From Octopus sinensis (lineage: Eukaryota), in NCBI RefSeq assembly GCF_006345805.1, contig NC_043018.1, positions 16,492,001 to 16,556,000 of the forward strand: a stretch of DNA of 64,000 nucleotides, given 5' to 3'. Below are positions 1,692 to 51,268 of this stretch, in pieces. How positions within the stretch are numbered: the first letter of the stretch is position 1; the number at the start of each line of letters is the position of its first letter. Under the pieces are notes generated by a model. The model saw only the letters and a list, made by a program, of their open reading frames with translations, was not told the DNA's origin and did not search any database. A program made the position numbers and the translations under genes.

Positions 1692-1890
1692 GTCCTCCTC
1701 CCCTTGCTCAAAGACAGTTTGCGTCCACAATATGCCAGTCAGGCTTTGCTGCCTAGATATGAAATGTCATTGTGTGTCTCTAGCGAGTTGCAGGTGTGTT
1801 CCTATAAATATCACTCGTGGCACTCATAACAGTATACTCCAAAGTGTAATCCCTATTCTCGTTTTCCTTGTAAATTTACTAAATTATTGA
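1692..1890 (+). CDS. Gene 1, terminal (mature peptide) exon of a Cys-rich knottin/toxin-like precursor; upstream exons lie before the window
   Basis: Acceptor tgtatttacag|G; phase 2 as in paralogues. Translates SSSPCSKTVCVHNMPVRLCCLDMKCHCVSLASCRCVPINITRGTHNSILQSVIPILVFLVNLLNY* (8 Cys, hydrophobic tail). Confidence 0.85.
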
Positions 1891-7243: not shown

Positions 7244-7317
<74 letters not shown>

Positions 7318-8706
7318 GATGTGTGTTTGTGTGTGTAAAGAAGAAGAGAAAACACAGCGTGTACAAATTCAAGAATAGAATAGAAAACGACAGCTGGAGT
7401 CAGCAAAGTTTAACGGTGGTCAGTGTATAACTAGCTCTACACAACCCTCATCAACCAGTGTGAAATTTGCACCTGAGAAAGTCTACTGAGCTGTTTGTAA
7501 AAATACCGTTCGAATCAAACAAGTATGTAACATTTAAATTATTCTTTGCGACTGTATGTGATTAAGTAATAGCATTACACAGTTATGGTAATGATGATGG
7601 TGGTAGTGGCAGAGCTTAAACCGTTTGTTGCCTGTTTGCATGTGTACAATCCAAGATCTGCAAAAAGAGAGGATCACCGGAATGATTTTCTGATCTTCAC
7701 TTTATATCTCATCGATTGTATTTGATGAAAGGGAATCAGTTGACCCCTTCAGTTTTGGTTGAAGTCGGGCTTTTGTAAATTTTAATTAACGTAAATCGTT
7801 TGCTAAGAAACAAGTGAACCTATTTTGGCTGGATGTTTGTGTTATACATTTCTCATTATTTTACAAAAGATGTTCCCATTTTCTTACTTTATGTCAAAAT
7901 ATTCTCATCCAACAAACTGCTGATCTTTGCAACACTGGCCAACTGCTACCCTCCTTTCCATGGAACACTATTTCACCAAGATTAATATCCATGGGTTACT
8001 GTTTCTATTGAGTTGATTGACCATTATTCTTTGTTTTAAATCGTGTGAATATATTCTGGTTCTGGAGTAGCCTTGTCATAGCAATCAAAACAACGTGTTT
8101 TTCATAAAGCGTTTTTAGTTGGTGTATGTGTGTGTGTGTGTGGTGTGTGTGTGTGTATGCGTGTGTGTGTGCGTGCGTGTTTGGTAACAATGCTATATCT
8201 AAATGATGAATGTAGAATCTTGAAGATATTTTTTGACAGTTACTGAATACTGTCCCGTATTTAGAGCAAAGCCGACATGCATAACCTTCTTCTGATATGA
8301 GACTTATACCTGGGGTACTTCTTCATCGATTCTTCGCTTAGTTTTTCCTTGCCCAGATTAGTCATTGACATACCTCATAAATAAAAACAATAGCAAGACC
8401 ATTAATTAAAAGAGACACGTAATATGATGCTCTTCCAGAAAGTATTGTATTTATAAAGATATACATGATAAACATATTTCTGTGTGAGGATAACATGACA
8501 CATGTATTCAGCATCGAACAATTGTATTTAGTCATGTTTAGTCTCAGATTGTTACATACAAGTGCAACCTTTTATAAGTGAAATGTGCAGGAAAGTTTGA
8601 TTTGGGTTGAAGAAAACAGAGAAAATACATTTGACTGAGTGCATTTCACATACAAGATTCCACCAACTGCAAACTGACAAACATCTCATAATTGTTTTGA
8701 TTGCAG

Positions 8707-8747
8707 AAATAAAAATAATATAGCTATAGAAGCTAGATAAACTTGAA
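8707..8747 (+). other. Putative 41-nt non-coding (5' UTR) exon of gene 2
   Basis: CTGAC branch-like motif, then ttttgattgcag| ... aa|gtaaga. Same 41-nt spacing at 24346-24386 (+), 38488-38528 (-) and 59495-59535 (-). Confidence 0.4.
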
Positions 8748-9054
8748 GTAAGAATATTTCATTCACTGTGAACAACATGGGGAATATTTTGGACAAATGC
8801 TTCGAAGACGTCATCTTCTCCTAAATTATATATTCACATTTGAAAATAAATCTAGATTAGTACTATTGATGCAATTAAATTAGCCATATTACTTATTGTT
8901 TAAATGGTAAATCTTGGATTTTTAGTGAAATATATTTGAACAGCTAGAAGATAATTGTTACCTAAATTTCCAGCTGAAGACTTTTGCTTATTTTCTAAGA
9001 AAAATGCTTTTGTATTAATCACTCTCGTTATATGTGTCTATCATCAGGTGCGTG

Positions 9055-9118
9055 ATGAAAGGCATCATTGTCCTATTGTTTTGTGTATTCATTTCACACA
9101 CCTTCTCGGATAAACAAG
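9055..9118 (+). CDS. Gene 2, signal-peptide exon
   Basis: Acceptor catcag|gtgcgtgATG, donor caag|gtaagt. MKGIIVLLFCVFISHTFSDKQ plus 1 nt (phase 1). Confidence 0.88.
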
Positions 9119-9876
9119 GTAAGTAGAATTAGAAATTTCTTTTATTTTATAGCAATCCGAAACGTAGTAGGAGAAAAGGCGGAAAATAGAAGGGCGGGAA
9201 GGAGGAAAATGAATAACGTTACTTTAACGGTCTTTCGGGTGTACCCAATTTATATGCAATTAAAGCCTTTAAATAAATAACTCTATTTATCAAAACTACC
9301 CATAAACCAAATATACGGAGTTAAGATTCTTCTATATAATATATAACATTTAATTAACAATATGAATGATACAAATCGGGAAGGATTCTAGTGGTGTGGT
9401 CTCATCTCTTACTCCTGTATTTGATTCAGAACGTAAACACGAATGAAGGACACTAAGCACATTGCTCGTCGAGCTAACCATTCTGCCAGCTCTCCGCCGC
9501 CGCCCTTAGAATTCTTAATTATTAAACTAATAACAGAAGAGATTCAGCGAATGCTGTATATATAATTTTTCACGTGTATTTTGTTTGTCATCTTGTCATT
9601 CCTTTTTATTGGTCCTTTGGTTTTTTTATCTCCTTTTATGTATTAAAAACATCCATCACTACAGTGATGAGCCATATTTAAGTGTATGAGTGAGGAACTT
9701 CGAGTTCCAGTCTTCATGATCCTGCACCTTGTTTCAGATCGTCTTACCATAAATACGTTATCCTCCATTCAATGAATTACCTGTTGAGTGATGCATGGGT
9801 ATTTTGTGTATTTCTACACGAAACTTTGGTAAATGGACTTCTAATGCTTCCATATGTATTTTAATATTTCTTTCAG

Positions 9877-9937
9877 ATGTCGCTTCCGTCCGTCAAAAGA
9901 GAGGACATTCTGTAGTTTTGAGTAAATTGACTAAAAG
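9877..9937 (+). CDS. Gene 2, propeptide exon
   Basis: Acceptor tttctttcag|AT, donor aaaag|gtaaga. 61 nt, (D)VASVRQKRGHSVVLSKLTK(R); phases 1 and 2 match the flanking exons. Confidence 0.88.
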
Positions 9938-11271
9938 GTAAGATCTACATATCTACATAATCGAATTACTAGACAAGCGCCCTCTAGTGAGGTTTCATGG
10001 CATGTGTCTATAGTAGAGAGGTCATCTTTCTTGAGACTCATTCCTGATTGTAGTTTTGGTGTAAAAGAGAATATGAAACGGGAATATATCATGTGAGAGG
10101 ATAGGAGAAAATTTTGCATGGCAAAATGGGCAAGTGTCTCTTGCTTTTGCTTTTGCCGACCAAAGCCTTGTGAGTGGATTTGTTAGACGGAAACTGAAAG
10201 AAGCTCGTCGTATATATGTATTTATATATGTAGGTGTGTATATACGTTTGTGTGTCTATACCCCCACCCCAATATCGCTTGACAACCCATGCTCCAGTGT
10301 GTCCGTCCCCACAACTTATAGTTTCTGCAAAAGTCACCGATAGATTAAGTACTAGGCTTACAAAGAATAAATTTGCTTGACTAAAGGCGATGCTCCAGCA
10401 TGGCCACAGTCAAATGACTGAAACAAGCAAAAGAATAAAGAGTAAAAACTGAATAATATTCGTTTCTATTTTGCCTAGAAAATTCATCAACAATTCATTC
10501 AGCCATAGGTGCAAGCATGACTGTCTAGTTAACAAGTCCGAGCGTTCATTCCCTGAACATGTGTCTTCTGCTATACGCCCAGCGCGACCAGCGACCAATA
10601 CCATTGAATGAATGTGGTAGAGGAAAAAATTCTATTATCTATATCTATTATTGGGACCCGTCGAAATTCCACGGAATGGAAAAAGTTAAGAGGACATGTT
10701 TAAGAGAGAAAGAAGTATTCTTTAAATATTCTTGACGTTTGTCTGCATCCATTTCCTCACGTCATCGACTGCATTATTTTTACCTTTTTCCCCCTCTGAT
10801 CCGTGCTCCATGTCAGCTCATTCTTTCTCGAGCAGCTTGTATCTGTATTTCCTGTGAATCCAGAGTTGGCCTTTATAAACAAATATCAAATTTTAAGCGA
10901 GCACATAATAAATAACTACACTTATGCGATAAGCAATGGTCACTATGAGAAAAAAAATTAGTTCATAAAAATAGATACTTCTCACTATCAACACACCACC
11001 ACCACCACCACCACCATCACAGCAGCAGCATTCTCATTCTCTCTCTCTCTCTCTCCCTCTCTCTCTCTTCTCTCTTTCCCTCGTATTCTCTTTTTCTCTC
11101 GTTCTTCGCCTCTACTTTCAGCTCATCAATCAACGAATTTGGCTTAAGTACATTAATATTAATCACTTCTCTCTAATTCTTCTACTCTTTTTCTTCACTC
11201 CTCCCTCTCTCTCTCCTTATTAGTCTTACTCCACCTCGCACCCACTCCACCTTCAGCTTTCGAACTAATCT

Positions 11272-13477: not shown

Positions 13478-13586
13478 GTATGCTTGCTCAAATTCTTATT
13501 GTAAAGGAGCAATCCCAGTAGATAACTGCTGCTTAGGTCCGGACTGTTTTTGCATTTGGGACGCATCGGGTTGCTGGTGTACTTAA
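13478..13586 (+). CDS. Gene 2, mature-peptide exon (tail-less 35-aa 8-Cys peptide; 77-aa precursor)
   Basis: Acceptor tgtatttacag|G. YACSNSYCKGAIPVDNCCLGPDCFCIWDASGCWCT*; the paralogous tail frame continues after TAA to TGA at 13673. Confidence 0.88.
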
Positions 13587-14963: not shown

Positions 14964-17900
14964 TACCTGCACGCATCCCACAATAACATCAACACCACCA
15001 ATAGTAAATCGAAATTCAAAACACACACCAACTCGAGTCCCAAAATCTGCCGGTATTCCCAACGTGAGAGAACATGTCTGCTGAGTGACTGTCCCTTCAC
15101 TCATCTTCCAGGGACCCGACGCACAAACAGAAACGGGGCTTCAAGCCAACACACAAACCTGAATAAATAAAAATAGAAACACACCATGCTGCAGTAATGC
15201 TGGTCCAGTCTTTTCAGGAAGACACAAAAACAACAACAACAAAAGTGGAAACTACAACCCTATCCAACAGTGCAACCACACCTCCAGCCAAAAACTGCTC
15301 CCTAAGCAGGAAAATTCTTTTTTAGCCATGTTGAACATGGCAAAAGAAATACACAAAAACATTCTAGCCATCATTCTAGCCATTCTAGCCATCACCATCC
15401 TATGCTATTACCCCAGTGCACCAATTCCCCACATTGCTGCCACTAACACACACAAAAAATCCAAGCCCTCTGCAACAGTCAAAACTAGCCACTACACTAA
15501 CCGCCACATTCCTACTCAATGCACAAGGTGTCAGCCCTTCCATCAATGCACAAAAATGGAAGGTCCAATTCATTGAAGACTGGGTTGGTAACCATTCACA
15601 CCGCATCCCTTTCTTCATTCTCACTGAGACCCACCTTGACAACTCCCACTTGGAAGCCGAAGTGAGAGTGAAGAATTTCACAACCATCCGCGCGGATCGT
15701 ATCGGCAGGAGGAAGGGTGGAACTGCCATTTTCCTGCATGATTCATTTACGGCAGATGGAAATAGTATTCTCCAACGGCTACTGTGAATCAGTCACCGTG
15801 CACAACAAAGCCAATGACCTGACAGTATTTGGCTCTATAGGCCGCCCCAAACACCCTACTGTGCTTTAAAGAATGCCTCAACAGCATTAAGTGCTTTATT
15901 CAACAGTGCCATTCTAGCAACATACTCATGATGGGAGACTTCAATCTACCCTGTGTTGACTGGACTACAAACTGTTTGAAACCAAGCACTCCCGCCTCAA
16001 ACGCTGACAAAGAAGCAGCAGAGTCACTTTTCGACTTTACGAATGAGTTTTTCTTGTCCCAACTTGTCCTTGCACCAACAAGACATCAGAACATTTTGGA
16101 CCTAGTGTTTAGTAACCACACTAACACTATACATAACGTTACAGTGGAAAAAACCCTTCTTTCAGACCATGACATGGTTCTCTGTAACATGAAATTCTAC
16201 ACAGCCGAAAGCTAATCCTAGTGACCTTCCTCCAGCCCACCCATTTGACAACATGGATCTCCATAATGCCAACTGGGATGCAATCAGGAACGAGCTATCA
16301 CATGTTGACTGGTCCTTTACACATACACACATCTCCACCACCCATAAACATCTTGGCAGATCTTTGTAGACACCGTCACAGACTATGTGCAAAACACTCC
16401 CCACCAAGACCTGTGAACAAAAAGTGCAGAATCCCCCAAAACAGAAAAACCATTATCAGAAAAATAAAAAGAACAAACAAAAAAATTAACAAACTAATGT
16501 ACTGCCAACAGCAACACACATTCGACGGCTATCGCACTGCTTGAATCCAAACAATATAACCTCCAACAATGCATGAAGACCCTCATCAATAACCAAAGAT
16601 CAGCTGAGGAGAAGTGGGCCATTGAAAAAATCAAACTCAACCCCAAAGTGTTATTTTCATTTGTGAGGAAACGCAGGGTCACTGTCTCCACTGTAGGCCC
16701 TCTAATTGACGAAACTGCCAAATCCATGGCCGAGATACTGCAGAAACAATACTGCTCTGTTTTCAGCAATCCTGATATGGCCGATCTGGGCTGTATCAGT
16801 GATGTTAACCCCCAACACACTATATCGGACATAACGTTTAGTGCCCCTGATGTCTTAGCGGCGATAAACGAAATAAAACACAATTCAGCAGTAGGCCCCG
16901 ATAGGTTCCCTGCTTGTGTCCTGAAGGTGTGTCGACACCAACTTGCATCTCCCCTTGCTAATCTGTGGAGAAACTCACTGGATGCTGGCTATATTCCAAA
17001 AAACCTTCTGTCCCAGTCTGTTGTCCCAGTTTTCAAAAAGGGAAACAAGTCCCTTGCAGTGAATTACCGTCCGATCTCACTCACCTCTCATATCATCAAG
17101 GTATTTGAGAGGTTGGTGAGATCTCGAATAACTCAATTTCTGGAAAGCAACAGACGGCTGATCTCCAACCAACATGGGTTCCGTAATGGAAGGGACTGCC
17201 TAACGCAGCTCCTGCATCACTTTGAGGACATTTTGAGAGCTTTGGGAAAGGGCTCCAACACCGATGTCATCTACCTTGATTTCAGTAAGGCCTTCGACAG
17301 GGTCGATCACAAGATCCTATTGAAAAAACTATCCAACATTGGTGTCTCTGGAAAGTTACTGAAATGGATCAAGTGTTTCCTGACAGACAGATCTCAACAT
17401 GTTGTAGTTGAAGGGGTAAAATCAAGCCCAGCCAAAGTCAGTAGTGGCGTTCCGCAAGGCACTGTGCTGGGCCCACTTCTTTTCATCATTTACATTAATG
17501 ACATTAATGACATCATCAAGCACAGCAACATAAAAATCTTTGCAGATGACTCCAAGCTACAGAAGGTCATAAATGAGGCGAGTGACCGGACATGCCTTCA
17601 GTCAGATCTACTGGCTGTTATCCAATGGGCAGAAAAAAACAATATGCTGCTGAACGAGGATAAATTTGAGCTAATCCACTTTGGAAAAGAGGATGCCCTG
17701 AAACTCCCATACTCCCTTCCTTCAGGTGAAACTCTCGCGGCGTCCAACAACATCAGAGACTTGGGAGTAATTGTGGACAACAACGTAAGCTGGGCCACTC
17801 ATATAAACACCAAAGTTGACATGGCCCGCAGAATGTGTTCCTGGATTCTCAGAACTTTCCAGTCGAGAGATATCCACACCATTATCCTTCTCTTCTCCAC

Positions 17901-18518
17901 TTTTGCCCGACCCCACCTTGAATACTGTTGTCCACTGTGGTCTCCCCACACAATACAAGGTATCATAAAAGTTGAAGCACCTCAAAGGGCAATCACAAAA
18001 AAGATAGATGGCATGACAGGCCTCGACTATTGGGGTCGACTAGAAAAGCTAAAACTCTATTCTCTCCAACGTCGTCGTGAGCGCTACATCATCTGCATGA
18101 TGTGGAAAATATTCCATCAGCATTGCCCAAATGATGTTGGCATCACCTTTAAGGTACATCCAAGGCTTGGGCCCCGTGCCATCCGCCCAAAACAAAAATC
18201 GCACTCTCATCTCATAACAACAATACGGCACAATTATTTCACCTCAATTGGCCCCGCTCTCTTAACATTACACCAAAACACATTAAAACAGAAACTGACC
18301 CTATAGGGTTCAAGACGTCTTTGGACAGATTCCTTCAAGAAATCCCGGATAAACCCCCTACACCCGGATATGTCTCTGTAAACAATAACTCTCTACTTGA
18401 GTGGGCCATAGTGCCCAAATTCTGACTTGAAAGACTTCACCAGGTGGTGCTATTAAGTTAGACATGGCCTGGGCCAATAATGGCCGAAACCTATCAAAGT
18501 ATCAAAGTATCAAAGTAT
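14964..18518 (+). mobile_element. 5'-truncated, frameshifted non-LTR retrotransposon (CR1/L2/Jockey group): ORF1 C-terminal remnant, APE endonuclease and reverse transcriptase
   Basis: CCCH-like CRYSQRERTCLLSDCPFTH at 15048-15104. APE motifs LTETHL, GDFNLP, LDLVFSN, SDHDMV. RT motifs YRPISLTS, QHGFR, YLDFSKAFDRVDH, GVPQGTVLGPLLF, FADD. 3' tail (TATCAAAG)3 at 18492-18515. Confidence 0.92.
16573..18306 (+). CDS. LINE ORF2 reverse-transcriptase fragment (577 aa open stretch of a disrupted ORF2)
   Basis: Canonical non-LTR RT motifs. Upstream endonuclease is split across frames, so the element is probably inactive. Confidence 0.85.
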   Translation: MKTLINNQRSAEEKWAIEKIKLNPKVLFSFVRKRRVTVSTVGPLIDETAKSMAEILQKQYCSVFSNPDMADLGCISDVNPQHTISDITFSAPDVLAAINEIKHNSAVGPDRFPACVLKVCRHQLASPLANLWRNSLDAGYIPKNLLSQSVVPVFKKGNKSLAVNYRPISLTSHIIKVFERLVRSRITQFLESNRRLISNQHGFRNGRDCLTQLLHHFEDILRALGKGSNTDVIYLDFSKAFDRVDHKILLKKLSNIGVSGKLLKWIKCFLTDRSQHVVVEGVKSSPAKVSSGVPQGTVLGPLLFIIYINDINDIIKHSNIKIFADDSKLQKVINEASDRTCLQSDLLAVIQWAEKNNMLLNEDKFELIHFGKEDALKLPYSLPSGETLAASNNIRDLGVIVDNNVSWATHINTKVDMARRMCSWILRTFQSRDIHTIILLFSTFARPHLEYCCPLWSPHTIQGIIKVEAPQRAITKKIDGMTGLDYWGRLEKLKLYSLQRRRERYIICMMWKIFHQHCPNDVGITFKVHPRLGPRAIRPKQKSHSHLITTIRHNYFTSIGPALLTLHQNTLKQKLTL

Positions 18519-20705: not shown

Positions 20706-23700
20706 AATAATAATATTAACAGGACATAATAACAGGCGTCTTTTGATTGGAGACAAATTGAAGTCAGCTGGCGTGTTGGGAATTTAGGCTTACGGCAGAG
20801 GGTAGCATGACGCTGTGGCAGTGATCGTGGTCAAACGAAAAAGGGCTAACGGTAGTTCAACAGTCACGTGAGCAGAGAAGAGAGACAAAAAGAGGAACAA
20901 AGGAAACAAAGAGGGAGAGAAGAGAGAGCAAAAATTGGAAGAAAGGTATTAAGTAGGGGGAGAAGTGAAAGAGAGCGAGAGAGTGCGTAGACGGAAGAAT
21001 GAAGGAGTGGCGAGAAAAAGAGAGAGACTGTGACACAGTGGAGGGCAAAGTAAGAAAGGCAAAGAAATGTGAGAGAGGGGAAAGAGAGAGAGTGTTGAAG
21101 AAGTCGTTCAAAATTTAGTGCAATATGTGCTTACATATAAGAAAACAAAATGTAGTACGCAACACATATATATATGTGTGTGTTTGTGTGTCTGTTCGTG
21201 TGTATGTATCATCTTCTATTTGTGAAAGAGATAAGTAATGGGTTGAGTAAAACATATGAACAACTTTTTGGCGATATTTGTCAAAACATGTAGCTACACT
21301 TCTCATCGACAAAAATCTTACTGCAATTACTCTTTCAAACTGTTGCTTTCATCTATCATGAAGATACTCTGCCCATTGCAATGCCAAGTGCAGGATATGA
21401 GATGTGTACTGTCATCATATTTCGCGGAAGCCTTAAAAAGTACAGAAAATGCTTTTTGGTATATATTCAGGCTTCTATATTCTGAGTTCGAATCTCTGCA
21501 GTTCAACTGTTCTTTCCCTCCTTTTTGAGACGATAAATAAGGTTCCAATATTCCCCACCTCCTTTCCGATATTCGTAGAAACCTGAGGTCGTTTAATTAA
21601 CGTCCAGAATTTATGACAGTTTGTAACACGATTTTTGACCTTAGGTAGCAACTGTTATTTCCTCTTTGCTTATCCCTAGAAACTATGCGAAATGAATAAT
21701 ATTTTCTCCAGACATTCATGTCTTTACATTGATTCAAACCCCAACGATTCCCCTTTCAGGCTCTCCAACTTCTCGTGACCATTATCAGAGATGCAAGTAT
21801 TGCCAGCCACTAAAGGACATCTCCAAGTGGTTAAGGTCAAGTAATTGGCGAACAAATTTGTGGTATTGATCAGAATATTCGCTGATACGATATTTTTGCT
21901 TCAGCAAACCAGCCCCGAATCTTTGGAAAATGTAATAGAAAATGTGTCACTTTGAAAGCATTGATGTCCAGGCACAAAAGCAAAGTGTGAAGGGAACAGG
22001 AGTAATTTCCTTTAACTTCCAAATAGAAGTAAACAGGAGATAACACTTACTATACAACGATAAAATAAAGAATAAGAATTCAATTTAAAGTGTCATCTAT
22101 GTCACAGATAACCCCGCCTTTCTTAGCTCGAGATCTGATTAACTACTGATTATATTGTAAGCAAGTATCTTCATTGGTATCTCAGCTTTCAATCTATCAT
22201 GCAAAACTTATTGGAGATTTAATCTAAGCTGTGCTGCAAAGAGATGTTACGGCCCGACTTTGATTATTCTAATATCGGTAAATTAACGTCTTTAAGAAAT
22301 CTCTAAACTAACTTCTTGATACATGTATGCAGCTCTGACGTCTAAAGAAATAAAATTCTACATTTACACGTCATATGAGAAAAATTCCAGATTATATTAT
22401 AAAAAAGAATGCCTATTTTTTTTACATAAGAGTATATATTTTACTTCATATTAAATCCCTGATACAAAATATAAAGCGGTCATAAATAAAATATTATTGG
22501 TTATAAAGACTTGGAGATCAGGGATAATCAGGATCTAAGCAACAATTTGGACTTTGCACATCTGAATCAGTCGTAAGTTGGTTCGGAAAAAGAACTTAAA
22601 AATTGTCTCCAATGAAGAAAGTTGACATAACCGAAGATATAAATTTCGAGATAGTTTGAAATGATGTTTTCTAATTACTAATTCACACAGCTGGACGAAG
22701 TGCACGGCGGGTTGGTAAGTATAGTATCTCATAACATAAATCAAATTGCTGATGCTTATACATACACACATTCATACACACATACATACACACATACACA
22801 CATACACACATACATACACACATACATACATACGTACGTACGTACATATATACATACATATATACCTCTATACATACATATATATATTTATATACATATA
22901 TGTATGTGGTTGTATGTATGTATACACACACACACGCACGCACACACACATATATATATTTATATAGGTGTGTGTGTGTGTGTGTTTGTAAAGAAGAAGA
23001 GAAAACACAGCGTGTGCAAATTCAAGAATAGAAAAGAAAACGACAGCTGGAGCAAAAAAAGTTTAACGGTGTTCAATGAATAACTAGCACTACACAACCC
23101 TCATCAACCACTTTGAACTTTGCACAAGAGAAAGTCTACTGAGCTGTTTGTAAAATACCGTTCGAATCTAATAAGTATGTACACATTTAAATCATTCTTT
23201 GCGACTGTATGTGATTAAGTAATAGCATTACACAGTTATGGTAATGATGATGGTGGTAGTGGCAGAGCTTAAACCGTTTGTTGCCTGTTTGTATGTGAAC
23301 AATCCAAGATCTGCAAAGAGAGAGGATAACCGGAATGATTTTCTGATCTTCACTTTATATCTCATCGATTGTATTTGATGAAAGGGAATCAGTTGACCCC
23401 TTAAGTTTTGAATGGATTCGAGCTTTTGTAAATTTTGTTTTTTAATTAACGTAAATCGTTTGCTAAGAAACAAGTGAAGCTATTTTGGCTGGATGTTTGT
23501 GTTATACATTTCTCATTATTTTACGAAAGATTTTCCCATTTTCTTACTTTATGTTAAAACATTCTCATCCAACAAACTGCTGATCTTTGCAACACTGGCC
23601 AACTGCTTCCCTCTTTTCCATAGAACACTAGTTGACCAAATTTGCTATCCCTGTGTTGCTGTTTGTATTGAGTTGATTGACCATTATTCTTTGTTTTAAA

Positions 23701-24693: not shown

Positions 24694-24757
24694 ATGAAAG
24701 GTATCAGTGTCCTACTGTTTTGTGTATTCATTTCATACACCTTCTCGGAAAAACAAG
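24694..24757 (+). CDS. Gene 3, signal-peptide exon
   Basis: catcag|gtgcgtgATG ... caag|gtaagt. MKGISVLLFCVFISYTFSEKQ. Confidence 0.88.
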
Positions 24758-25514: not shown

Positions 25515-25575
25515 ATGTCGCTTCCATTCGTCAACAGAGAGGAGCTTCTGTAGGTTTGAGTAATATGACTAAAAG
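25515..25575 (+). CDS. Gene 3, propeptide exon
   Basis: tttcag|AT ... aaaag|gtaaga. (D)VASIRQQRGASVGLSNMTK(R). Confidence 0.88.
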
Positions 25576-27024: not shown

Positions 27025-27068
<44 letters not shown>

Positions 27069-27231
27069 ATATTGTCCTCCGAAAATAGCTTGATAACCGA
27101 TTTTGTTGTGTTTTCATCCCCGTAACGTAGTGGTTCGGCAAGAGATAAGATAGAATAAGTACTAGGCAAGTCCTGGTGGCGATTATTAACAGACATACAT
27201 CAATACACAACTTCTTACTTCTCTTCTAAGT

Positions 27232-27694
27232 ATTCTTTTCTACTCTTGGTACAAGGTCCGAAATGTTGGGGGAGTGGTCCATTCCTATAGATCGACCCCA
27301 GTACGCAACTGGTACTTAATTTATCAACCCCGAAAGGATTAAAGACAAAGTCGACCTCGGCGGAATTTGAACTCAGAACGTAGCGGCAGACGAAATACCT
27401 CTAAGCATATCGCACGGCGTACTAACGATTCTGCCAGCTCACAGCCTTTCCCCTATAACTATTAAAACCATTTATTTATTAATTACCCTGTCACTAAGGC
27501 GGTGAACCGGCAGAAGCGTTAGCACGCCGGACGAGGTGTTAAGCGGTATTTCCTCTGTTCTGAGTTCAAATTCCGCCGAGGTCGACATTGACTTTCATCC
27601 TTTCGGGTCGTTTACAGTTGTTTACTGTGGTCGATCAATTCGACTGGCCCCACTACCCCAAAATTTCGGGCCTTTTGCCAAGAGTAGAAAAGAA
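27232..27694. mobile_element. Inverted SINE-A pair, gene 3 last intron
   Basis: Same arrangement. Confidence 0.75.
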
Positions 27695-27971
27695 TTACCA
27701 TATCACTGTCTACATCTACTCATCTACTTATGAAATTCGGAAAATATATATTCATAGACTTGGTTTTTTTTTAAATACTGGAGAAAGTACAAATGACAAT
27801 TTTTGAAAGAACGGGAAAATATGACCCGTCCTATTTGTTTCGATTCTGCATGCTGTACGTTCACATCCCGTTGGATTTTTTCGACGTCGATAAAATGCAA
27901 CAGCTTCTTCCCTAACGAGAAATCATAATTTAATGAGTTCATTAATTCACTACAATATTCTGCATTTACAG

Positions 27972-28167
27972 GTCCGCTTGCTCAAGGGGCTATTGTCAAA
28001 GATATATGCCAGCCATTCGCTGCTGCCCAGTTATGGTATGTATGTGCATTTGGCAAATATCGGGTTGCTGGTGTAGAACACAAGATAAAAGCCGCGCCAC
28101 TCATAATAGTATACTCCAAAGTGTAATCGCTATTCTCGTTTTCCTTGTAAATTTACCAATTTATTGA
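27972..28167 (+). CDS. Gene 3, mature-peptide exon with hydrophobic tail (106-aa precursor)
   Basis: tgcatttacag|G. SACSRGYCQRYMPAIRCCPVMVCMCIWQISGCWCRTQDKSRATHNSILQSVIAILVFLVNLPIY*. Confidence 0.88.
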
Positions 28168-29555
28168 CGTTCTGCTCTTTTGAATCTTGTGGATAAATGT
28201 CATAGGTCAGATTGTTTTTATAGAAGGAGAAAATCTACAACTTTTTCAATTTTGAAATTTAACCAATCGTCAAATCCTATGATAGTAGAAAACTATGAAT
28301 AAACATCAAGAGACATAGTGAAATATAAAATGTTAACGAGCAGAAGTTTGATTTTGTAATTTATCCTGGAAAGAAATTCACGTATGTTGCACCAAAAACT
28401 GAAATGGTAAAAGAAGAGAAAATCTGCAAACCATAACTTACGACTATGTCTTTTCTTACAAACCTAAATTAATACGACGAATGTATTTAATATCTAATAT
28501 ATTTATGTTATTATTCCGTCAAATCTTAATGAAATCTCAATTAAATAAATTTATTAAAGCATTACAAATACTTAGTGCCTCGTTTTTCACTTTGCTATTT
28601 GTTTGTAAGTTATTGAACGGTAACAAAGTCTTTGTGGTTTGTTCTTCACTTTGGTGTTTGCCTTTAATTTATCGATATGAATGGTAAGAATTTACATTGC
28701 AGTGGTATGTTATATTATTGTAAAAACATTTTTTCTACGAGTTCTATTTTATAAAATTTAAAAAAGAAATAGGAAAAAAATAAGAGATAAGAAAGGAAAA
28801 GAGAGAAAAAAAAGTGAACCAGTTAAAATTGAGGGGAGAGTGATGGGTCACATAACCCAGATCGAATAGTGTGCTCAGCTGTTCCTCGCAGTAGTGATCC
28901 TGATGGCTTTGCCGCGAAGAACGTTGTAGCAGCCACTTCCTGAGGCTCATTAATCCAATGGGCCGCCTTCATCCCTCAGTTGGGAATGAAATCCAAGAAC
29001 ACCTGAGGTCTCGACGTACCGGGTACAAACTGATAGTAGCCAGTGAGGACCAGATATTTCTTGAATGTTCTCTCCTCGTGATTATGGAAGGTGACACCCG
29101 GATTTGCAGCCGTTGCTGCAAGTTTGGTTCCTTGTCAAAAATATTTATTGATGTTGTTGTGTTGTTCATCGGACAGTCGTAGGCGAGCAGACAGGTGATT
29201 GAGTTACGATCGATAGGTGACTGAATTATGATCGATATGTGATTGAGTTATTAGCGTTAGGTGATTGAGTTATGGTCGATAGGTGATCGAGTTATGATCG
29301 ACAGGTGATTGAGTTACGATCGATAGGTGATTGAAATATGACCACTTCCAACTTCTTTTTGACAGATATAAGGTGTATAAGTTCCCACTGTGCACACTGT
29401 CTTTCCATTCTTAAGAAGGCTGCACTTGATAAGATAATGGGTTTTCAGCAATTCGTTAACAGGCGAGTGATCACGATGTCTTCCGCATCTCCTTGACTGA
29501 GGTTGCAAAATTGAACCGAGTATGTCAAATAATTAAATACATACACTCAAATATG

Positions 29556-34206: not shown

Positions 34207-34402
34207 TCAATAAATTGATAATCTTACAAGGAAAACGAGAATAGCGATTGTACTTTGGAGTATAGTGTTATGAGTGCCACGCGTGTTATTTTGTAAATGA
34301 CACCTGCAACCCGATGCTACCCAAAAGCATATACATTTCATACCTGGGCAGCAGGAAATGGCTGTCATATATTTTTGACATATACTCGTTGTGCAAGCGT
34401 AC
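34207..34402 (-). CDS. Gene 4, mature-peptide exon with hydrophobic tail (106-aa precursor)
   Basis: Minus-strand acceptor tgtatttacag|G. YACTTSICQKYMTAISCCPGMKCICFWVASGCRCHLQNNTRGTHNTILQSTIAILVFLVRLSIY*. Confidence 0.88.
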
Positions 34403-37340: not shown

Positions 37341-37401
37341 CTTTTAGTCGTATTACTCAAACCTACAGTATCTCCTGTATGTTGATGGACGGGAGCGACA
37401 T
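37341..37401 (-). CDS. Gene 4, propeptide exon
   Basis: tttcag|AT ... aaaag|gtaaga. (D)VAPVHQHTGDTVGLSNTTK(R). Confidence 0.87.
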
Positions 37402-38116: not shown

Positions 38117-38180
38117 CTTGTTTATCTGAGAAGGTGTATGAAATGAATACACAAAACAGTAGGACACTGATACCTTTCAT
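38117..38180 (-). CDS. Gene 4, signal-peptide exon
   Basis: catcag|gtgcgtgATG ... caag|gtaagt. MKGISVLLFCVFISYTFSDKQ. Confidence 0.88.
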
Positions 38181-44519: not shown

Positions 44520-45390
44520 ATGTATTTAATTATTTGACATACTTGGTTCAATTTTGCAACCTCACTCTAGGAGATGCGGAAGACATCGTGATCACTCGCC
44601 TGGCAACGAATTACTGAAAATTCATCATCGTATCAAGTGCAGCATTCTTAAGAAAGGAACGTCAGTGTGCACAGTTGGAACTTATACATATTATATCTGT
44701 CAAAATGAAGTTGGAAGTGATCATAACTCAATCACCTGTCGATCATATCTCAATCATCTGTCGGCTCGACTACGATTGTCCGATGAACAACATCACAACA
44801 TCAATAAATACTTTTGACAAGGGACCAACCTTGCTGCAACGGTTGCTACTCCGGGTGTCACCTTCCATAATCACGAGGAGAGAACAATCAAGAAACATTT
44901 GGTCCTCACTGGCTACTATCAGTTTGTACCGGTTACGTCGAGACCTCAGTTGTTCTTGGACTTCATTCCTAACTGAGGGATGAAGACCATTGGATTAATG
45001 AGCGTCAAGAAGTGGTTGCTGCAAAGTTCATCGCGGCAACGCCATCACGGCCACTACTGCGAGGCCCAGCTGAGATTCTTAACCTTTATATGTCTGTCTA
45101 TAAGTAAATGCTTAAGTTCTTGAAGTTGTATAGCATGTCACATTTGTGTATATAGTTTTGGCTAAATTAGCCTGCAAGAAAATAGTAATAAGAATATGAA
45201 GACAACCTCTCATGTGTTTGTGTTTGTGCAATCCAAGAATGGAAAATATACGCGCACATGCAAACACATATCTCTATGATAATCTACTTTTTCGTTCGCC
45301 CATTATATATTAACTAGCAGTATCACTCGGCGTTGCTCGGCTTTATTTCGACCCTTTAGAATTAGAATTTTTGAAAAGTAATAATCTTTG
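43560..45390 (-). pseudogene. Remnant of a further unit from which all coding exons have been deleted
   Basis: Downstream GC-rich block ends at ...cagctgag (45074) and joins directly to intron sequence (attcttaacc...), then jumps to the next unit's downstream block at ~45390. Confidence 0.7.
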
Positions 45391-45843
45391 AAAGTATTAG
45401 AATATATAAGCACGAAGCAGATACTGCATTGCCTCGTGTGTATATATTTAATCTAAGTTGTAAGAAGTCTTCACCGAGCAAATTATTTTATTTCCTAAAA
45501 AACGTCTGAAATCATTGGTCCAGGTGTTAGATGGTAAATGTTTAAGTTTTTCTTTCCATTTTGAATTTTATCCCTAATGGTGGTTTGGAACTTAACTCTC
45601 CTCTCTATGATGGATACCTCATTTGTGCTTAAAGGTACACAATATTTATGTGAGTAATATTTAGTCCATTGGCAAAATTTTCTATATGCTAGGCCTCTGG
45701 ATATGGAAATATTTCAAATTACTCATTGATATAATTAATTATATATATATATATATACATATATATAAAAGTGTGTGTGTGTGTATGTGGGTGTGTATGT
45801 CTATATTTATGTATATATGTATGTATGTATGTATGTATGCATG

Positions 45844-45890
<47 letters not shown>

Positions 45891-46056
45891 TGTGTGTGTG
45901 TGTGTGTGGTATCAATTACTCATTGATATTATTAATTATATATATATATATATACATATATATAAAAGTGTGTGTGTGTGTATGTGGGTGTGTATGTCTA
46001 TATTTATGTATATATGTATGTATATATGTATGTATGCATGTATAATATATATATAT

Positions 46057-46097
<41 letters not shown>

Positions 46098-46308
46098 GTG
46101 TGCGTGTGTATGTATGTATGTATTTGACATCCTTGGTTCAATTTTGTAACCTCAGGCAAGGAGATGCGGAAGACATCCTGATCACTCGCCTGGCAACGAA
46201 TTACTGAAAACTCATCATCGTATCAAGTGCAGCATTCTTAAGAATGGAACGACGGTGTGCACAGTGGGAACCTATGCACATTATATCTGTCTAAACGAAG
46301 CTGGAAAT

Positions 46309-46396
46309 GATCATAACTCAATCACCTGTCGATCATAACTCAATCACCTGTCGATCATAACTCAATCACCTGTCGATCATAACTCAATCACCTGTC
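46309..46396 (+). repeat. 22-bp minisatellite (GATCATAACTCAATCACCTGTC)x4 inside the downstream GC-rich block
   Basis: Four tandem copies here, three at ~53920-53987, several degenerate copies at ~29190-29340 (inverted), one or two in other units. Confidence 0.85.
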
Positions 46397-47410
46397 TGCT
46401 CGACTACGACTGTCCGATGAACAACACCACAACATCAATAAATATTTTTTTGACAAGGGACCAACCTTGCTGTGGCGGCTGCCACTCCGGGTGTCACCTT
46501 CCATAATCACGAGTAGAGAACATTCAAGAAATATTTGGTCCTCACTGGCTACTATCAGTTTGTACCGGTTACGTCGAGACCTCAGGTGTTCTTGGACTTC
46601 ATTCCGAACTGAGGGATGAAGACCATTGGATTAATGAGCCTCAAGAAGTGGTTGCTGCAAAGTTCATCGCGGCAAATCCATCACGGCCACTACTGCGAGG
46701 CCCAGCTGAGTACACTATTCGATCTGGGTTATGTGACACATCACTCCTCCCCTCAATTTCTACTGGTTCACCTTTTTTTCCACTGTTTTCTTTTCTTATC
46801 TCTTATTTTTTCCCATTTCTTTTTTAAACTTTATAAAATAGAACTCGTAGAATATATGTTTTTACAATAATATAGCATAACACTGCAATGTAAATTCTTA
46901 CCATTCATATCGATAACTTAAAGGCAAACACCACAGCGAAGAACAAACCATAAATACTTTGATACCCTTCAATAACTTACAAACAGTGAAAAACGAAGCA
47001 CAAAGTGTTCTGCAATGCTTGATTAATTTTATTTAATTGATATTTCATTAGAATTTGACGGAATAATCGCATAAAGATATTAGATATTAAATACATTCGT
47101 CGTATTAATTTAGGTTTGTAAGAAAAGTCACAGTTGTATGTTATGGTTTGCAGATTTTCTCTTCTTTTACCATTTCAGTTGTTGGTGCAACACAAGTGAA
47201 ATTTCTTTACAGGATAAATTACAAAATCAAACTTCTGCTCGTTAATATTTTATATTCCACTATGACTCTTGATGTTTATTCATAGTTTTCTACTCTCATA
47301 GTATTTGAGGATTGGTTAAATTTCAAAATTGAAAAAGTAGTAGATTTTCTCCTTCTATAAAAACAATGTGACCTATGACCTTTATCCACAAGATTCAAAA
47401 GAGCAGAACG

Positions 47411-47609
47411 TCAATAAATTGATAATTTTACAAGGAAAACGAGAATAGGGATTATACTTTGGCGTATGCTGTTATGAGTGCCACGCGTGTTATTTTCTTT
47501 AATGCACTTGCATATCGGTTTTTTCCCACAGCAGCAGGTACATACCAAACCTCGGCAGCAATCCTGGTTTGGATTAGAAGTGTAACACATATACCTTGAA
47601 CAAGATTCC
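47411..47609 (-). pseudogene. Gene 5, orphan mature-peptide exon (10 Cys) with intact frame; its own pro and signal exons are deleted. Pseudogene or alternative terminal exon of gene 6
   Basis: tgtatttacag|G then ESCSRYMCYTSNPNQDCCRGLVCTCCCGKKPICKCIKENNTRGTHNSIRQSIIPILVFLVKLSIY*. Upstream deletion junction at 50646-50650. Confidence 0.75.
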
Positions 47610-47885
47610 CTGTAAATACAGAATATTGTAGTGAAATAAGAAACTCATTAAATTATGATTTCTCGTTAGGGAAGAAGTTCTTGCATTTTATTGACTTCGA
47701 GAAAACCAACGGGATGCGAACGTACAGCATGCAGAACCGAAACAAATAGGACGGGTCATATTTTTCCGTTCCTTCGAAAATTGTCATTTGTACTTTCTCC
47801 AGTATTTAAAAAAAAAACCAAGTCTATGAATATATATTTCCCGAATTTTATAAGTAGATATGTAGATGTAGACAGTGATATGGTA

Positions 47886-48374
47886 ATTCTTTTCTACTCT
47901 TGGCACAAGGCCCGAAATGTTTGGGGGGGGGTAGTGGGGCCAGTGGAATAGATCGAACCCAGTAAACAACTGGTACTTAATTTATCCACCCTGAAATGAC
48001 GAAAGGCAAAGTCGACCTCGGCGGAATTTGAACTCAGAACGTAGAGACAGACGAAAATACTGCTTAACACCTCGCCCGGCGTGCTAACGTTTCTGCCGTT
48101 TCACCGCCTTAGTGACAGAGTAATTAATAAGTAAATTGTGTTAATAGTTAAAGGGGAAAGGCTGTGAGCTGGCAGAATCATTGGCACGCGGGGTTATATG
48201 CTTAGAGGTATTTCGTCTGCTGCTACTTTCTGAGTTCAAATTCCGCCGAGGTCGACATTGCCTTTCATCCTTTCGGGTTCGATAAATTAAGTAACTGTTG
48301 CGTACTGGGTTCGATCTAATCGACTGGCCCATTGCCCCAACATTTCGGGCCTTGTACAAAGAGTAGAAAAGAAT
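47886..48374. mobile_element. Inverted SINE-A pair upstream of gene 5 exon
   Basis: Same arrangement. Confidence 0.75.
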
Positions 48375-49850
48375 AGTTAGAAGGAAGGTAATAAGTTGAG
48401 TATTGATGTATGTCAGTTAATAATCGCCACCAAGACTTGCCTAGTACTAATTCTTTATCTTTTGCCGAACCGCTACGTTACGGTGATGAAAACACACCAG
48501 GATCGGTTATCAAGCGATGCTGGGAAAACAATATATACATGCATACGTACATACACATATATATATATATACGACGAGCTTCTTTCAGTTTCCGTCTACC
48601 AAATCCACTCACAAAGATTTGGTCAGGCCAGTTATGCTCTATGTTCGAAGTTATCGTCACTGTTGTGACAAAATAGTGATTGATTTTAACCGAGATTTTC
48701 TCGTCTGCAACTGGGAAATCAAAGCTGCATTGTATGTGGTAAAATTTCTTTTGTTACGGTCATTATTGTTTGTCCTGTCTACTTCTCTACGCATCCTAAA
48801 TAAGATGTGAAAACGACGTTTCCAAAAGAAGACACAACACAATACTCCATTTTGAAAATAACTTTTGAAATGGGATTCTTAACCTTTATATGCTTTTCAA
48901 ATCTGATTACTTTGGTATATTTGTCTCTGTATCAAATAAAAGGAAAGAAAGAAAGAGAAACTGACTTTCTTGCCTCGTTGCTTCATTGTCATTTATTAAG
49001 GATGGACATTAATGTCTGTCTATAAGTAAATGCTTAAGTTCTTGAAGTTGTATAGCATGTCACATTTGTGTGTATAGTTTTGGCTAAATTAGCCTGCAAG
49101 AAAATAGTAATATGAATATGAAGACAACATATCATGTGTTTGTGTAGGTGACCGCTACATTACATCACACATTGTGCAATCCAAGACCGGAAAATATACG
49201 CGCACATGCAAACACATATCTCTATGATAATCTACTTGTTCGTTCGCCCATTATATATTAACTAGCAGTATCACTCGGCGTTGCTCGGCTTTATTTCGAC
49301 CCTTTAGAATTAGAATTTTTGAAAAGTAATAATCTTGCATTATATAGTTTGTTATTCTCTTTAAGTGAACATTTTTCATGGTTGAAATGGCAACACAGCA
49401 ATCAGAAAATCGTAAAAAGTAGGGATTTTCATAGAAAAAAAAGCACCTTTGTGATGTGAATCATTTTTGGTGTTAACATGGCTCGACTTGAAGTGTTCCG
49501 TCTACTGAAGAAAGAGCAAGCCTTCTTCTACCATACTCTCAATTTTGGTCAACTTGCGCCGCAGGGTCTCGGAGGAGAGAGTGTTAAGTTGAAGGCTACC
49601 AAACCTGCCACGCACAGACAACTTCAGCTTTGTATATAGAGATAGATTAGTTCGAAAGGTGAAGGTGGAGTGGGTGCGAGGTGGAGTAAGACTGAGTAGA
49701 AGAGAGAGACGGAGGAGTGAAGAAAAAGAGAAGAAGTAGAGAGAAGTGATTAATATTAATATAATTAAGACAAAGGCGTTGATTGGTGTGCTGAAGGGTG
49801 AGGCGATGAACGAGAGAAAAAGAGAATACGAGGGAGAGAGGAAGAGAGAA

Positions 49851-49908
<58 letters not shown>

Positions 49909-51268
49909 CAACAAATGTGATGATGGTGTTTTGATAGTGAAAATTATCTATTTTTATAAACTAATTTTTTTCTCATAGTGACCATTGCTTATCGCATAAG
50001 TGTAGTTATTTATTATGTGCTCGCTTAAAATTTGATATTTGTTCATAAAGGCCAACTCTGGATTCACAGGAAATACAGTTACAAGCTGCTCGAGAAAGAA
50101 TGAGCAGACATGGAGCACGGATCAGAGGGGGAAAGAGGTAAAAATAATGCAGTCGATGACGTGAGGAAATGGATGCAAACAAACTTCTAGAATATTTAAA
50201 GAATCCTCCTTCCTCTCTTGATCAGGTCTTCTTAACTTTTTCCATTCCGTGGAATTTCGACAGGTCACAATAGTAGACATATATAATAGAATTCCATTCA
50301 TTTTCCTCTACCAAATTCATTCAGCTGGTATTGTCAAACGATATTGGGAGGGGGGGCGGACAAACACAGACGCTCAAACATATACACACACCAACATATA
50401 TAAATACATTTATACGACGAGCTTCTTTCAGTTTCCGTCTACCAAATCCACTCATAACGATTTGGTCGGCCCGAGGCTATAGTAGGAGACACTTGCCTAA
50501 GTTGCCACGCAGTGGGACTGAACCCGGAACCATGTGTTTGGTAAGCAAGCTCCTTACCACGCAGCCACTCCTATATTACTCCTGAAAATTTTTTCTATCG
50601 TCTCCCATGTTATATTCCACTTTCATATTCTCTTTTACACCAAAACTACATTCATATTTAGATATAGCGTTGTTACCAAACACTCACGCACGGACACACG
50701 CACATACAGACACACACACACACACACACACGCCAACTAAAAAAGGCTATATGAAAAACACATTGTTATGACTGCTATGACAAGGCTATTCCAGAACTAG
50801 AATGTATTCACACGATTTAAAATAAAGAATACTCGTCAATCAACTCAATACAAACAACCCACGGATAGCAAAATTGTTCAAATAGTGTTCCATGGAAAAG
50901 AGGGTAGCAGTTGGCCAGTGTTGCAAAGATCAGCAGTTTGTTGGATGTGAATGTTTTAACATAAAGTAAGAAAATAGGAAAATCTTTCGTAAAATAATGA
51001 GAAATGTATAAGACAAACATCCAGCCAAAATAGGTTCACTTGTTTCTTTGAAAACGATTTACGTTAATTAAAAAACAAAATTTACAAAAGCTCGACTTCA
51101 TCCAAATTTAAGGGGTCAACTGATTCCCTTTCATCAAATACAATCGATGTTTACTCCGGTGTTTACTCCGGTATATATATGTATAGATATATATGCATGT
51201 ATGTATGTATATGCCTGCTGCCATTGATATATATATATAAATATATACATATATATATATATATTTAC

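Follow-up and report, generated by a model that had tools for sequence, protein, structure and literature searches.

Why should two tandem copies of an exon be almost identical in the adjoining intron, the coding tail and the downstream DNA, and yet differ by a cluster of amino-acid replacements in the short domain between them? This question is raised by a 64,000-nucleotide stretch of Octopus sinensis DNA (NC_043018.1, positions 16,492,001 to 16,556,000; hereafter the window), in which two paralogous terminal exons encode a predicted secreted, cysteine-rich peptide. Copy 5 (g5) occupies positions 47411-47609 on the minus strand. Behind its phase-2 acceptor (ttacag|G), the first base of the exon completes a split codon; the exon encodes a 35-codon cysteine domain with 10 cysteines, followed by a 30-codon tail that ends at the stop codon at 47413-47411. 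The paralogue with which we compared it, copy 6 (g6), lies at 55001-55199 on the same strand.

An earlier note on this DNA had reported that the two copies differ by eight substitutions, all of them non-synonymous and all within the cysteine domain. Direct comparison at an offset of 7590 bp reproduced this observation. The segment of copy 5 comprising codons 6-36 of the mature peptide (47501-47593, minus strand) and its counterpart at 55091-55183 showed exactly eight mismatches, at positions 47501, 47502, 47517, 47545, 47548, 47553, 47561 and 47593. They correspond to the changes Y/N, D/E, R/P, L/M, V/L, P/Q and I/R, the last one involving two nucleotides, and none is synonymous. The coding tail (47411-47500) was identical in both copies, as had also been claimed, and a single indel was found directly beyond the stop codon. 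As developed below, this pattern very probably results from conversion of the flanks around an old peptide-coding island, protected selectively or mechanically, in a terminal exon that was duplicated in tandem. As an evolutionary phenomenon this is known; what is new is the peptide family and the duplication of its terminal exon.

Gene conversion of the flanks around an old exon difference

Copies 5 and 6 each belong to a larger duplicated unit, and we aligned the two units (45387-50654 and 53188-58179, respectively, both on the minus strand) globally. The 170 substitutions present in 4964 aligned columns were very unevenly spread. Outside the cysteine segment, the core of the alignment (46087-48686) differed at 20 of 2482 bp (0.8%), as compared with 8 of 93 bp (8.6%) inside it (Poisson P = 1.3e-6). 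Comparison of the segment with the 500 bp on either side of it (7/997) led to the same result (Fisher P = 8e-6). These findings agreed with the view, expressed in the earlier note, that the spatial clustering is a stronger signal than the purely non-synonymous nature of the eight differences, which is not significant by itself (the probability of finding no synonymous change among eight is 0.055). The exon is an outlier with respect to its near flanks, but not with respect to the entire unit: the distal part, at 49301-50654, differed by 9.0% between the paralogues (114/1263), a value not distinguishable from the 8.6% of the exon (P = 1.0). The exon is therefore a high-divergence island amid near-identity, yet its divergence does not exceed that of the part of the duplication that looks oldest.

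A single database protein had words in common with exon 5, namely P0001, a 72-residue "hypothetical predicted protein" of Octopus vulgaris. The corresponding O. vulgaris locus (L001; OX597835.1, 7.67-7.71 Mb) is collinear with positions 37-64 kb of the window, with about 96.6% identity including gaps, or about 2% substitutions. It contains three exon copies: OvA at 16393, which is of the copy-6 type, and OvB at 22556 and OvC at 28726, which are both of the copy-5 type. OvB and OvC form a very recent pair, with about 0.5% divergence in their flanks and no difference in the exon.

We aligned g5, g6, OvA, OvB and OvC over 4 kb. Far upstream of the exon (49301-49900), g5 and g6 differed by 8.0%, as compared with 1.9% between g5 and OvB and 1.4% between g6 and OvA, indicating one-to-one orthology and a duplication several times older than the split of the two lineages. 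In the intron adjoining the exon (47610-48090), the difference between g5 and g6 was only 0.4%, and the differences between lineages were larger (1.5% for g5-OvA and for g6-OvA, 2.5% for g5-OvB; 1.5-2.7% for orthologues). Downstream of the exon (46401-47410), g5 and g6 differed by 0.6%, OvA and OvB by 0.9%, and sequences from different lineages by about 2%. In the cysteine domain, the values were 7.3% for g5-g6, 10.1% for OvA-OvB, 2.8% for g5-OvB and 3.7% for g6-OvA. With unconverted paralogues at 8-9% and orthologues at 1.4-2%, the age of the duplication is about 4-5 times that of the split between the window lineage and the O. vulgaris reference. The distal duplicated intron (49301-50654, minus strand), where orthologues differ by 1.4-1.9%, escaped homogenisation.

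A site was considered paralogue-specific if g5 was the same as OvB, g6 the same as OvA, and the two types differed. There were 36 such sites at or above 48710, two at 48099 and 48186, and six in the exon (47501, 47502, 47545, 47548, 47553 and 47561, i.e. spanning 47501-47561); the site-pattern scan found none elsewhere in 45800-48098. Six of the eight exon differences are thus common to the O. vulgaris orthologues and must therefore be older than the split of the two lineages. As to the remaining two, g5 alone has changed at 47593 (N to Y) and g6 alone at 47517 (P to Q). The flanks, for their part, carry sites at which g5 and g6 share one state and OvA and OvB another, a pattern that requires conversion after the split. 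Furthermore, the presence of many intron sites at which OvB stands apart from g5, g6 and OvA indicates that the intron of copy 5 was overwritten by copy-6-type sequence.

On the upstream side, the conversion tract comprises the last 490 bp of the intron preceding copy 5 and ends at the exon (47610-48098, minus strand); the paralogues differ there by 0.4%, and both window copies show OvA-type states. On the other side, the converted tract covers the 3' untranslated region (UTR) and the downstream flank of copy 5 (46087-47410, minus strand), where the paralogues differ by 0.6%, no old paralogue-specific site is left, and several lineage-specific sites are common to both paralogues. In a Sawyer-type permutation test on runs of concordant polymorphic sites, for which we used our own implementation of the GENECONV logic rather than the GENECONV program, the longest run shared by g5 and g6 comprised 17 sites (P = 0.0014), and further runs of 15 and 13 sites adjoined the exon. 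The test was also significant for OvA and OvB (P = 0.003). With flanks more alike between paralogues than between orthologues, these results demonstrated that the clustering is due mainly to gene conversion, one of the explanations listed in the earlier note, which homogenised the flanks on both sides of the exon and in both lineages, sparing the cysteine domain.

A second cluster, of six g5/g6 differences, was noted in the area of 48099-48186, two of them (48099 and 48186) being the old paralogue-specific sites mentioned above. The possibility that it corresponds to an exon was considered and rejected, as it sits in the spacer between the arms of an inverted repeat resembling a short interspersed nuclear element (SINE). 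This SINE-like or tRNA-derived pair of inverted repeats (arms ...GTCGACCTCGGCGGAATTTGAACTCAGAA...) is present in intron 2 at 48000-48300 and 55590-55890 of the window. In addition, a perfect 22-bp tandem repeat (GATCATAACTCAATCACCTGTC) is found in four copies downstream of exon 5 (46309-46396) and in three copies downstream of exon 6 (53922-53987), which accounts for a 22-bp gap in the alignment of the units.

A duplicated terminal exon behind one pair of signal and pro exons

The earlier note had referred to copies 5 and 6 as two genes. They are indeed two paralogous cysteine exons, but not two complete genes, as signal and pro exons are present for copy 6 only. In the window, four of six cysteine exons of the family (g2, g3, g4 and g6) are preceded by a signal exon and a pro exon. 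The signal exon, 64 nt long, begins with MKGISVLLFCVFISYTFS and ends at a phase-1 donor (G|GTAAGT). The start of its peptide, MKGI(S/I)VLLFCVFIS(Y/H)TFS, is highly conserved in g2, g3, g4, g6, O. vulgaris and Octopus bimaculoides. The pro exon (61 nt), located about 0.8 kb after the signal exon, has a phase-1 acceptor and a phase-2 donor, and the cysteine exon follows 2.4-3.5 kb later (about 3.1 kb in g6). The pro exon ends with ...TKR in g2-g4 and with ...TNR in g6, and with KR or K-x-KR, a basic site, in O. bimaculoides. Intron 1 is in phase 1 and intron 2 in phase 2, the last exon comprises both the mature peptide and the 3' UTR, and the splice sites and open reading frame (ORF) were verified.

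The signal-peptide exon upstream of g6 (59126-59189, minus strand) has the same length and donor as its homologues. The pro-region exon, which ends with ...MTNR (58308-58368, minus strand, 61 nt), is the sole pro exon upstream of copies 6 and 5 on the minus strand, and no signal or pro exon was found between these two copies. The duplicated unit with copy 5 starts 128 bp inside intron 2 and therefore contains neither of these exons. Copy 5 is the same as copy 6 in its acceptor, phase, stop and AATAAA, and is in frame with the donor of the g6 pro exon; splicing of the signal and pro exons to either cysteine exon produces an open precursor of 107 codons. The AATAAA polyadenylation signal of copy 5 (47275-47280, minus strand) lies 131 nt past the stop codon. 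AATAAA was also found after copy 6 (54866-54871) and after five more family exons checked (g1, g3, g4, OvA and OvB); in g2, the 900 nt scanned past the stop contained no AATAAA, only ATTAAA at 174 and 187 nt. "Gene 5" is thus a duplicated terminal exon located behind the signal and pro exons of gene 6. We infer that it is used as an alternative last exon; otherwise, it would be an orphan exon.

In O. vulgaris, one pair of signal and pro exons serves three cysteine exons, and the P0001 model joins the pro exon to OvB, skipping OvA. This model (L001 10001-27166) is chimeric, consisting of a non-signal "exon 1", the real pro exon, the first 21 codons of OvB and a piece of the intron of the next unit, and the real signal exon was missed by the annotation. 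Its "exon 1" (MLRPDFDY...) was considered as a protein start and rejected, since it encodes no signal peptide and its ATG is ACT in the corresponding sequence upstream of copy 6 (61609-61638).

A search with the full g3 precursor yielded four O. bimaculoides RefSeq proteins (LOC128250513, -514, -516 and -541), all designated "uncharacterized protein". All four match the window genes in signal, pro-region, tail and the eight cysteines, and at the genomic level they likewise consist of three exons, which supports the gene model; in these proteins, the tail is annotated as coding. LOC128250514 comprises one signal exon, one pro exon and two intact cysteine exons 900 bp apart, the distal one being used in the model. 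In LOC128250513, a decayed cysteine exon with an in-frame stop is skipped and the distal one is used. The two adjacent O. bimaculoides cysteine exons show the same kind of contrast as copies 5 and 6, with flanks that are about 95% identical and cysteine domains that are about 35-40% different. The loci concerned (L003 21899-23090 and L004 12333-14897; CM046622.1, about 29.18-29.27 Mb) contain several N-masked runs, which limit the view. The presence of the same layout in O. vulgaris and O. bimaculoides indicates that tandem duplication of the terminal exon is a recurrent route by which this family grows.

Probable selection on the cysteine domain and rival explanations

On the tree relating g5, g6, OvA and OvB, the cysteine domain underwent 13 nucleotide changes, all 13 non-synonymous. 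About 30% of the viable mutations in the codons of this domain are expected to be synonymous, using the bias between transitions and transversions seen in the flanks, and the probability of observing no synonymous change, which is 0.055 for the eight differences of the pair, is 0.009 for these 13. It decreases to 0.0007 upon addition of the seven changes found in an O. vulgaris exon fragment (see below). All 10 cysteine codons are intact in every copy (g5, g6, OvA, OvB and OvC), as is the ORF in g5, OvB and OvC, and codons 6 and 7 were hit by repeated change (Y/N/D and M/R/K, respectively). In the g3-g4 pair, the proportion of non-synonymous differences per site (pN) was 0.25 in the cysteine domain, versus a synonymous proportion (pS) of 0.08, with flanks at 3-5%. 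The 13 non-synonymous changes out of 13 moderately support diversifying selection on the cysteine domain, though they are not conclusive for the g5/g6 pair. Positive selection, one of the explanations listed in the earlier note, is moderately favoured by the tree but not by the pair alone, for which the rate of non-synonymous change (dN) does not exceed the unconverted level.

We propose the following history, of which the old age of the duplication, the conversion of the flanks and the gene structure are shown by the data. An old tandem duplication copied the terminal exon of one gene encoding a secreted, cysteine-rich prepropeptide that may resemble knottins, together with its 3' flank and the larger part of the intron before it. 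After the split of the lineages, repeated interlocus gene conversion made the two copies alike in the intron, in the C-terminal tail, in the 3' UTR and further downstream, the intron of copy 5 being overwritten by copy-6-type sequence in the process. As the conversion tracts stop at the cysteine domain, the old divergence is kept as an island of at least 61 bp (61-93 bp), in which the differences and every later change alter an amino acid and all cysteine codons stay fixed. Selection for distinct peptide isoforms, we infer, would both have made the replacements and remove the conversions that overwrite them, and heteroduplex rejection at the mismatch-dense island may help.

Several observations weigh against this proposal. 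In the g5/g6 pair, dN does not significantly exceed the divergence of unconverted neutral sequence (8/93 versus 9.0%) and the probability of finding no synonymous change is 0.055, so that the island could persist unselected, through chance tract ends or a mismatch barrier. Copy 5 has no signal and pro exons of its own, its expression being only predicted, and a single other lineage, O. vulgaris, was used to polarise the changes. In deep paralogue pairs, pS in the cysteine domain is as high as pN (0.45-0.65), and these pairs alone do not provide an omega above 1; such values fit a coding island older than its homogenised flanks. Nor does the proposal predict the excess of transversions, which account for all eight differences between the two exons and for 11 of the 13 changes on the tree, as compared with 81 transitions and 81 transversions among the other 162 substitutions between the units. 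Even when it is taken into account that the changes are non-synonymous, P for this excess is ~0.01-0.02. A transversion bias in the hypervariable regions of conopeptides was reportedly described by Conticello et al. in 2001.

The proposal also leaves unexplained a 138-bp tandem duplication that is present in O. vulgaris directly upstream of OvB and OvC (L001 22418-22555 and 28588-28725) and holds a partial exon. Its 56 coding bases show seven differences from the adjacent exon, all non-synonymous, and its 82 intron bases are identical. The partial exon has its own acceptor and comprises the first 18 codons, ending at the CC pair; the predicted product is a 26-residue peptide with four cysteines. 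The duplication is likeliest to be the relic of a further old exon type with a homogenised intron, or to stem from an unseen paralogue by way of a short conversion. Copy 5 of the window, the intron of which was overwritten by copy-6-type sequence, lacks this duplication.

We considered the possibility that the island is neutral, i.e. that the flanks were converted and the island survived by chance, or through a block of heteroduplex extension by mismatches, with no selection and with copy 5 as an unexpressed orphan. This is consistent with the exon being no more diverged than unconverted neutral sequence, with the modest probability value for the pair, with the lack of signal and pro exons in copy 5, and with the existence in an O. 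bimaculoides relative of a decayed, skipped cysteine exon. Yet it would not be expected to yield 13 non-synonymous changes out of 13 (P = 0.009), nor to preserve 10 cysteine codons and the ORF in g5, OvB and OvC, together with the acceptor and the AATAAA signal. Furthermore, across the family the 5' limit of hypervariability falls at the codons with which the mature peptide begins, and in O. bimaculoides the exon chosen in the RefSeq models is the distal member of such pairs. We therefore regard a neutral origin of the pattern as rather unlikely. Localised hypermutation of the mature-peptide exon, with a mutation rate about 10-fold higher in the cysteine domain, has been proposed earlier for conopeptides and was also raised in the earlier note. 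It would account for the transversions (8/8 versus 50% in the flanks; P ~0.005), for the confinement of the differences in the 138-bp duplication to its exon part, and for the high synonymous divergence of the cysteine domain in deep paralogue pairs. However, orthologues differ at just 3/105 and 4/105 nucleotides of the domain, versus about 2% in the flanks, the young OvB/OvC pair shows no exon difference at all, six of the eight differences are old, and a mutational process should have given some synonymous changes among the 13. This explanation is disfavoured by these data and appears very improbable.

The near-identity of the close flanks (0.4-0.8%) and the eight purely non-synonymous differences could also suggest that the duplication is recent and that positive selection then acted rapidly on the cysteine domain, without gene conversion. 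This scenario is contradicted by the data, since six of the eight differences are common to the O. vulgaris orthologues, the distal part of the units is 8-9% diverged with one-to-one orthology that is clear across assemblies, and the near flanks differ less than orthologues do, which a pre-split duplication could show only if these flanks had been converted. Finally, the high similarity of the two units might have arisen from an assembly artefact in which two alleles of one locus were placed in tandem, the scenario that the earlier note had considered fatal to its observation. Yet both exon types occur in tandem, together with a third copy, in an independent, chromosome-level O. vulgaris assembly, and the units differ by 8-9% plus indels in their distal part, which leaves this scenario with practically no likelihood and excludes tandem-assembled alleles.

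The peptide family and its relatives

The four other cysteine exons of the window are g1 at 1692-1890 (plus strand), the upstream exons of which lie off the window; g2 at 13478-13586 (plus strand; signal exon 9055-9118, pro exon 9877-9937); g3 at 27972-28167 (plus strand; signal exon 24694-24757, pro exon 25515-25575); and g4 at 34207-34402 (minus strand; signal exon 38117-38180, pro exon 37341-37401). Over all pairs of the six window copies, divergence was 5-9% in the last 400 bp of the intron, 3-7% in the 3' UTR, 13-21% in the tail and 22-53% in the cysteine domain; the contrast between similar flanks and a divergent cysteine domain is thereby seen throughout the family. In g2, the stop codon (13584-13586) is located one residue past the last cysteine, so that the predicted product lacks the hydrophobic tail, and a homologous tail sequence continues in frame behind this stop. 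The cluster is roughly palindromic over 1-64000: g1-g3 are encoded by the plus strand and g4-g6 by the minus strand, and the two groups converge near 31 kb. Its arms are joined by long inverted matches of about 90-91% identity (for example 7263-10115 with 60963-58109, and 27026-29237 with 35313-33139). A GC-richer stretch between g2 and g3 contains a 577-codon ORF (16573-18306, plus strand) with an RVT_1 domain (Pfam, E = 2.7e-31), which is probably a retrotransposon. An Rfam scan of the window gave no match.

Eight cysteine columns are invariant across the family. In g2-g4, the cysteines are arranged as C-x4-C-x8-CC-x4-C-x-C-x6-C-x-C; the last loop is x5 in g1, and g5 and g6 add two cysteines. 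The spacing corresponds to C-C-CC-C-C with an extra CxC...CxC pair, as in many spider inhibitor cystine knot peptides, and looks like that of an inhibitor cystine knot (knottin). The 10 cysteines of copies 5 and 6, and of the orthologues of both in O. vulgaris, include a CxCCC run (47522-47530 and 55112-55120 in the window). At the corresponding positions of g2-g4, CxC is followed by I/F and W, and the loop of g1 is shorter and different. The last loop is also longer by one codon in copies 5 and 6. The disulfide framework may have changed within the family.

The best sequence matches in the PDB were theraphotoxins, with E values that are not significant (0.07-0.45), and the same applied to matches with metallothioneins; a profile search of the PDB gave no match. 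AlphaFold2 models had mean confidence scores (pLDDT) of 63 for the cysteine domain and 48 for the O. bimaculoides precursor, both too low to use. No Pfam family was found in a scan of the six cysteine exons at E values up to 10, and a profile search of 1.84 billion proteins with the cysteine domains as a query retrieved only P0001. Word-indexed protein searches with exon 5 and exon g3 returned the mis-modelled P0001 or nothing, and a full-text literature search for the peptide strings gave no match.

The tail, i.e. the 27-30 codons that follow the last cysteine, remains open as far as a shared stop codon in 13 of the 14 copies compared in three species, with a pN/pS of about 1-2, which fits a segment constrained solely to be hydrophobic. 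It consists of a polar spacer followed by about 15-18 hydrophobic residues at the very C-terminus, and in this layout it resembles a glycosylphosphatidylinositol (GPI)-attachment signal or a membrane anchor. To label the family as venom toxins would be premature.

Like the octopus family, most conotoxin superfamilies of cone snails have three coding exons, with introns in phases 1 and 2; in the O, M and T superfamilies, these exons likewise encode signal, pro-region and mature peptide (PMC3862624). Shared features also include introns that measure about 1-3 kb or more and are conserved among family members, a near-invariant signal, a basic cleavage site, and a hypervariable mature region with invariant cysteines, the codons of which are conserved in conotoxins (PMC3823881), arranged around a C-C-CC-C-C core. 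Unlike conotoxins, the octopus peptides come from a cephalopod, have 8 or 10 cysteines and a hydrophobic C-terminal tail of 27-30 residues, and show no detectable sequence similarity to any annotated family. In the octopus family, the conserved flanks demonstrably result from gene conversion, which to our knowledge is not the usual explanation given for conserved flanks in Conus. Another parallel is offered by MgCRP-I of the mussel Mytilus galloprovincialis, a non-venom molluscan family that also combines a conserved pre-pro region, a dibasic site, a phase-1 followed by a phase-2 intron, a last exon comprising mature peptide and 3' UTR, a C-C-CC-C-C core, and a hypervariable mature peptide to which positive selection is confined (PMC4558851). 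It differs from the octopus family by its six cysteines, the lack of a hydrophobic tail and the absence of detected sequence similarity, and tandem terminal exons behind one signal/pro pair, as found in octopus, have not been described for it.

The evolution of the octopus copies is comparable to that of the primate L/M opsins and of RHD/RHCE, tandem paralogues with introns homogenised by conversion and exon differences maintained by selection, in that flanks are closer between paralogues than between orthologues and a few coding sites of functional importance are paralogue-specific across species. In octopus, however, what is protected is the domain of a hypervariable, ligand-like peptide and not a few tuning sites, and the duplication concerns a terminal exon, not a whole gene. 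Alternative last exons that provide different peptides from one precursor gene are known from calcitonin/CGRP. The arrangement predicted for octopus is similar in having a shared signal/pro pair followed on the same strand by two terminal exons (three in O. vulgaris), each with an identical phase-2 acceptor and with a stop and AATAAA of its own. It differs in that the two exons are paralogous copies rather than encoding unrelated peptides.

It is conceivable, though we put this forward only tentatively, that one gene gives rise to two or three knottin-like peptides via alternative last exons, with conversion keeping the splice and polyadenylation context uniform and selection keeping the cassettes distinct; the tail might then tether the peptides to the cell surface rather than allow their release in venom. 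More generally, conserved introns around a hypervariable, toxin-like exon can come from conversion of the flanks and protection of the island, without the need for a fast-mutating exon, which bears on the long-running argument over the origin of conotoxin-type hypervariability. The present work also brings to light a family of octopus secreted cysteine-rich peptides that is represented in public databases only by "uncharacterized" or mis-modelled proteins, and that seems to expand by copying its terminal exon and not entire genes. Its members are candidates for venom, chemosensory or neuromodulatory peptides, and the locus is one where conversion and selection are measurable.

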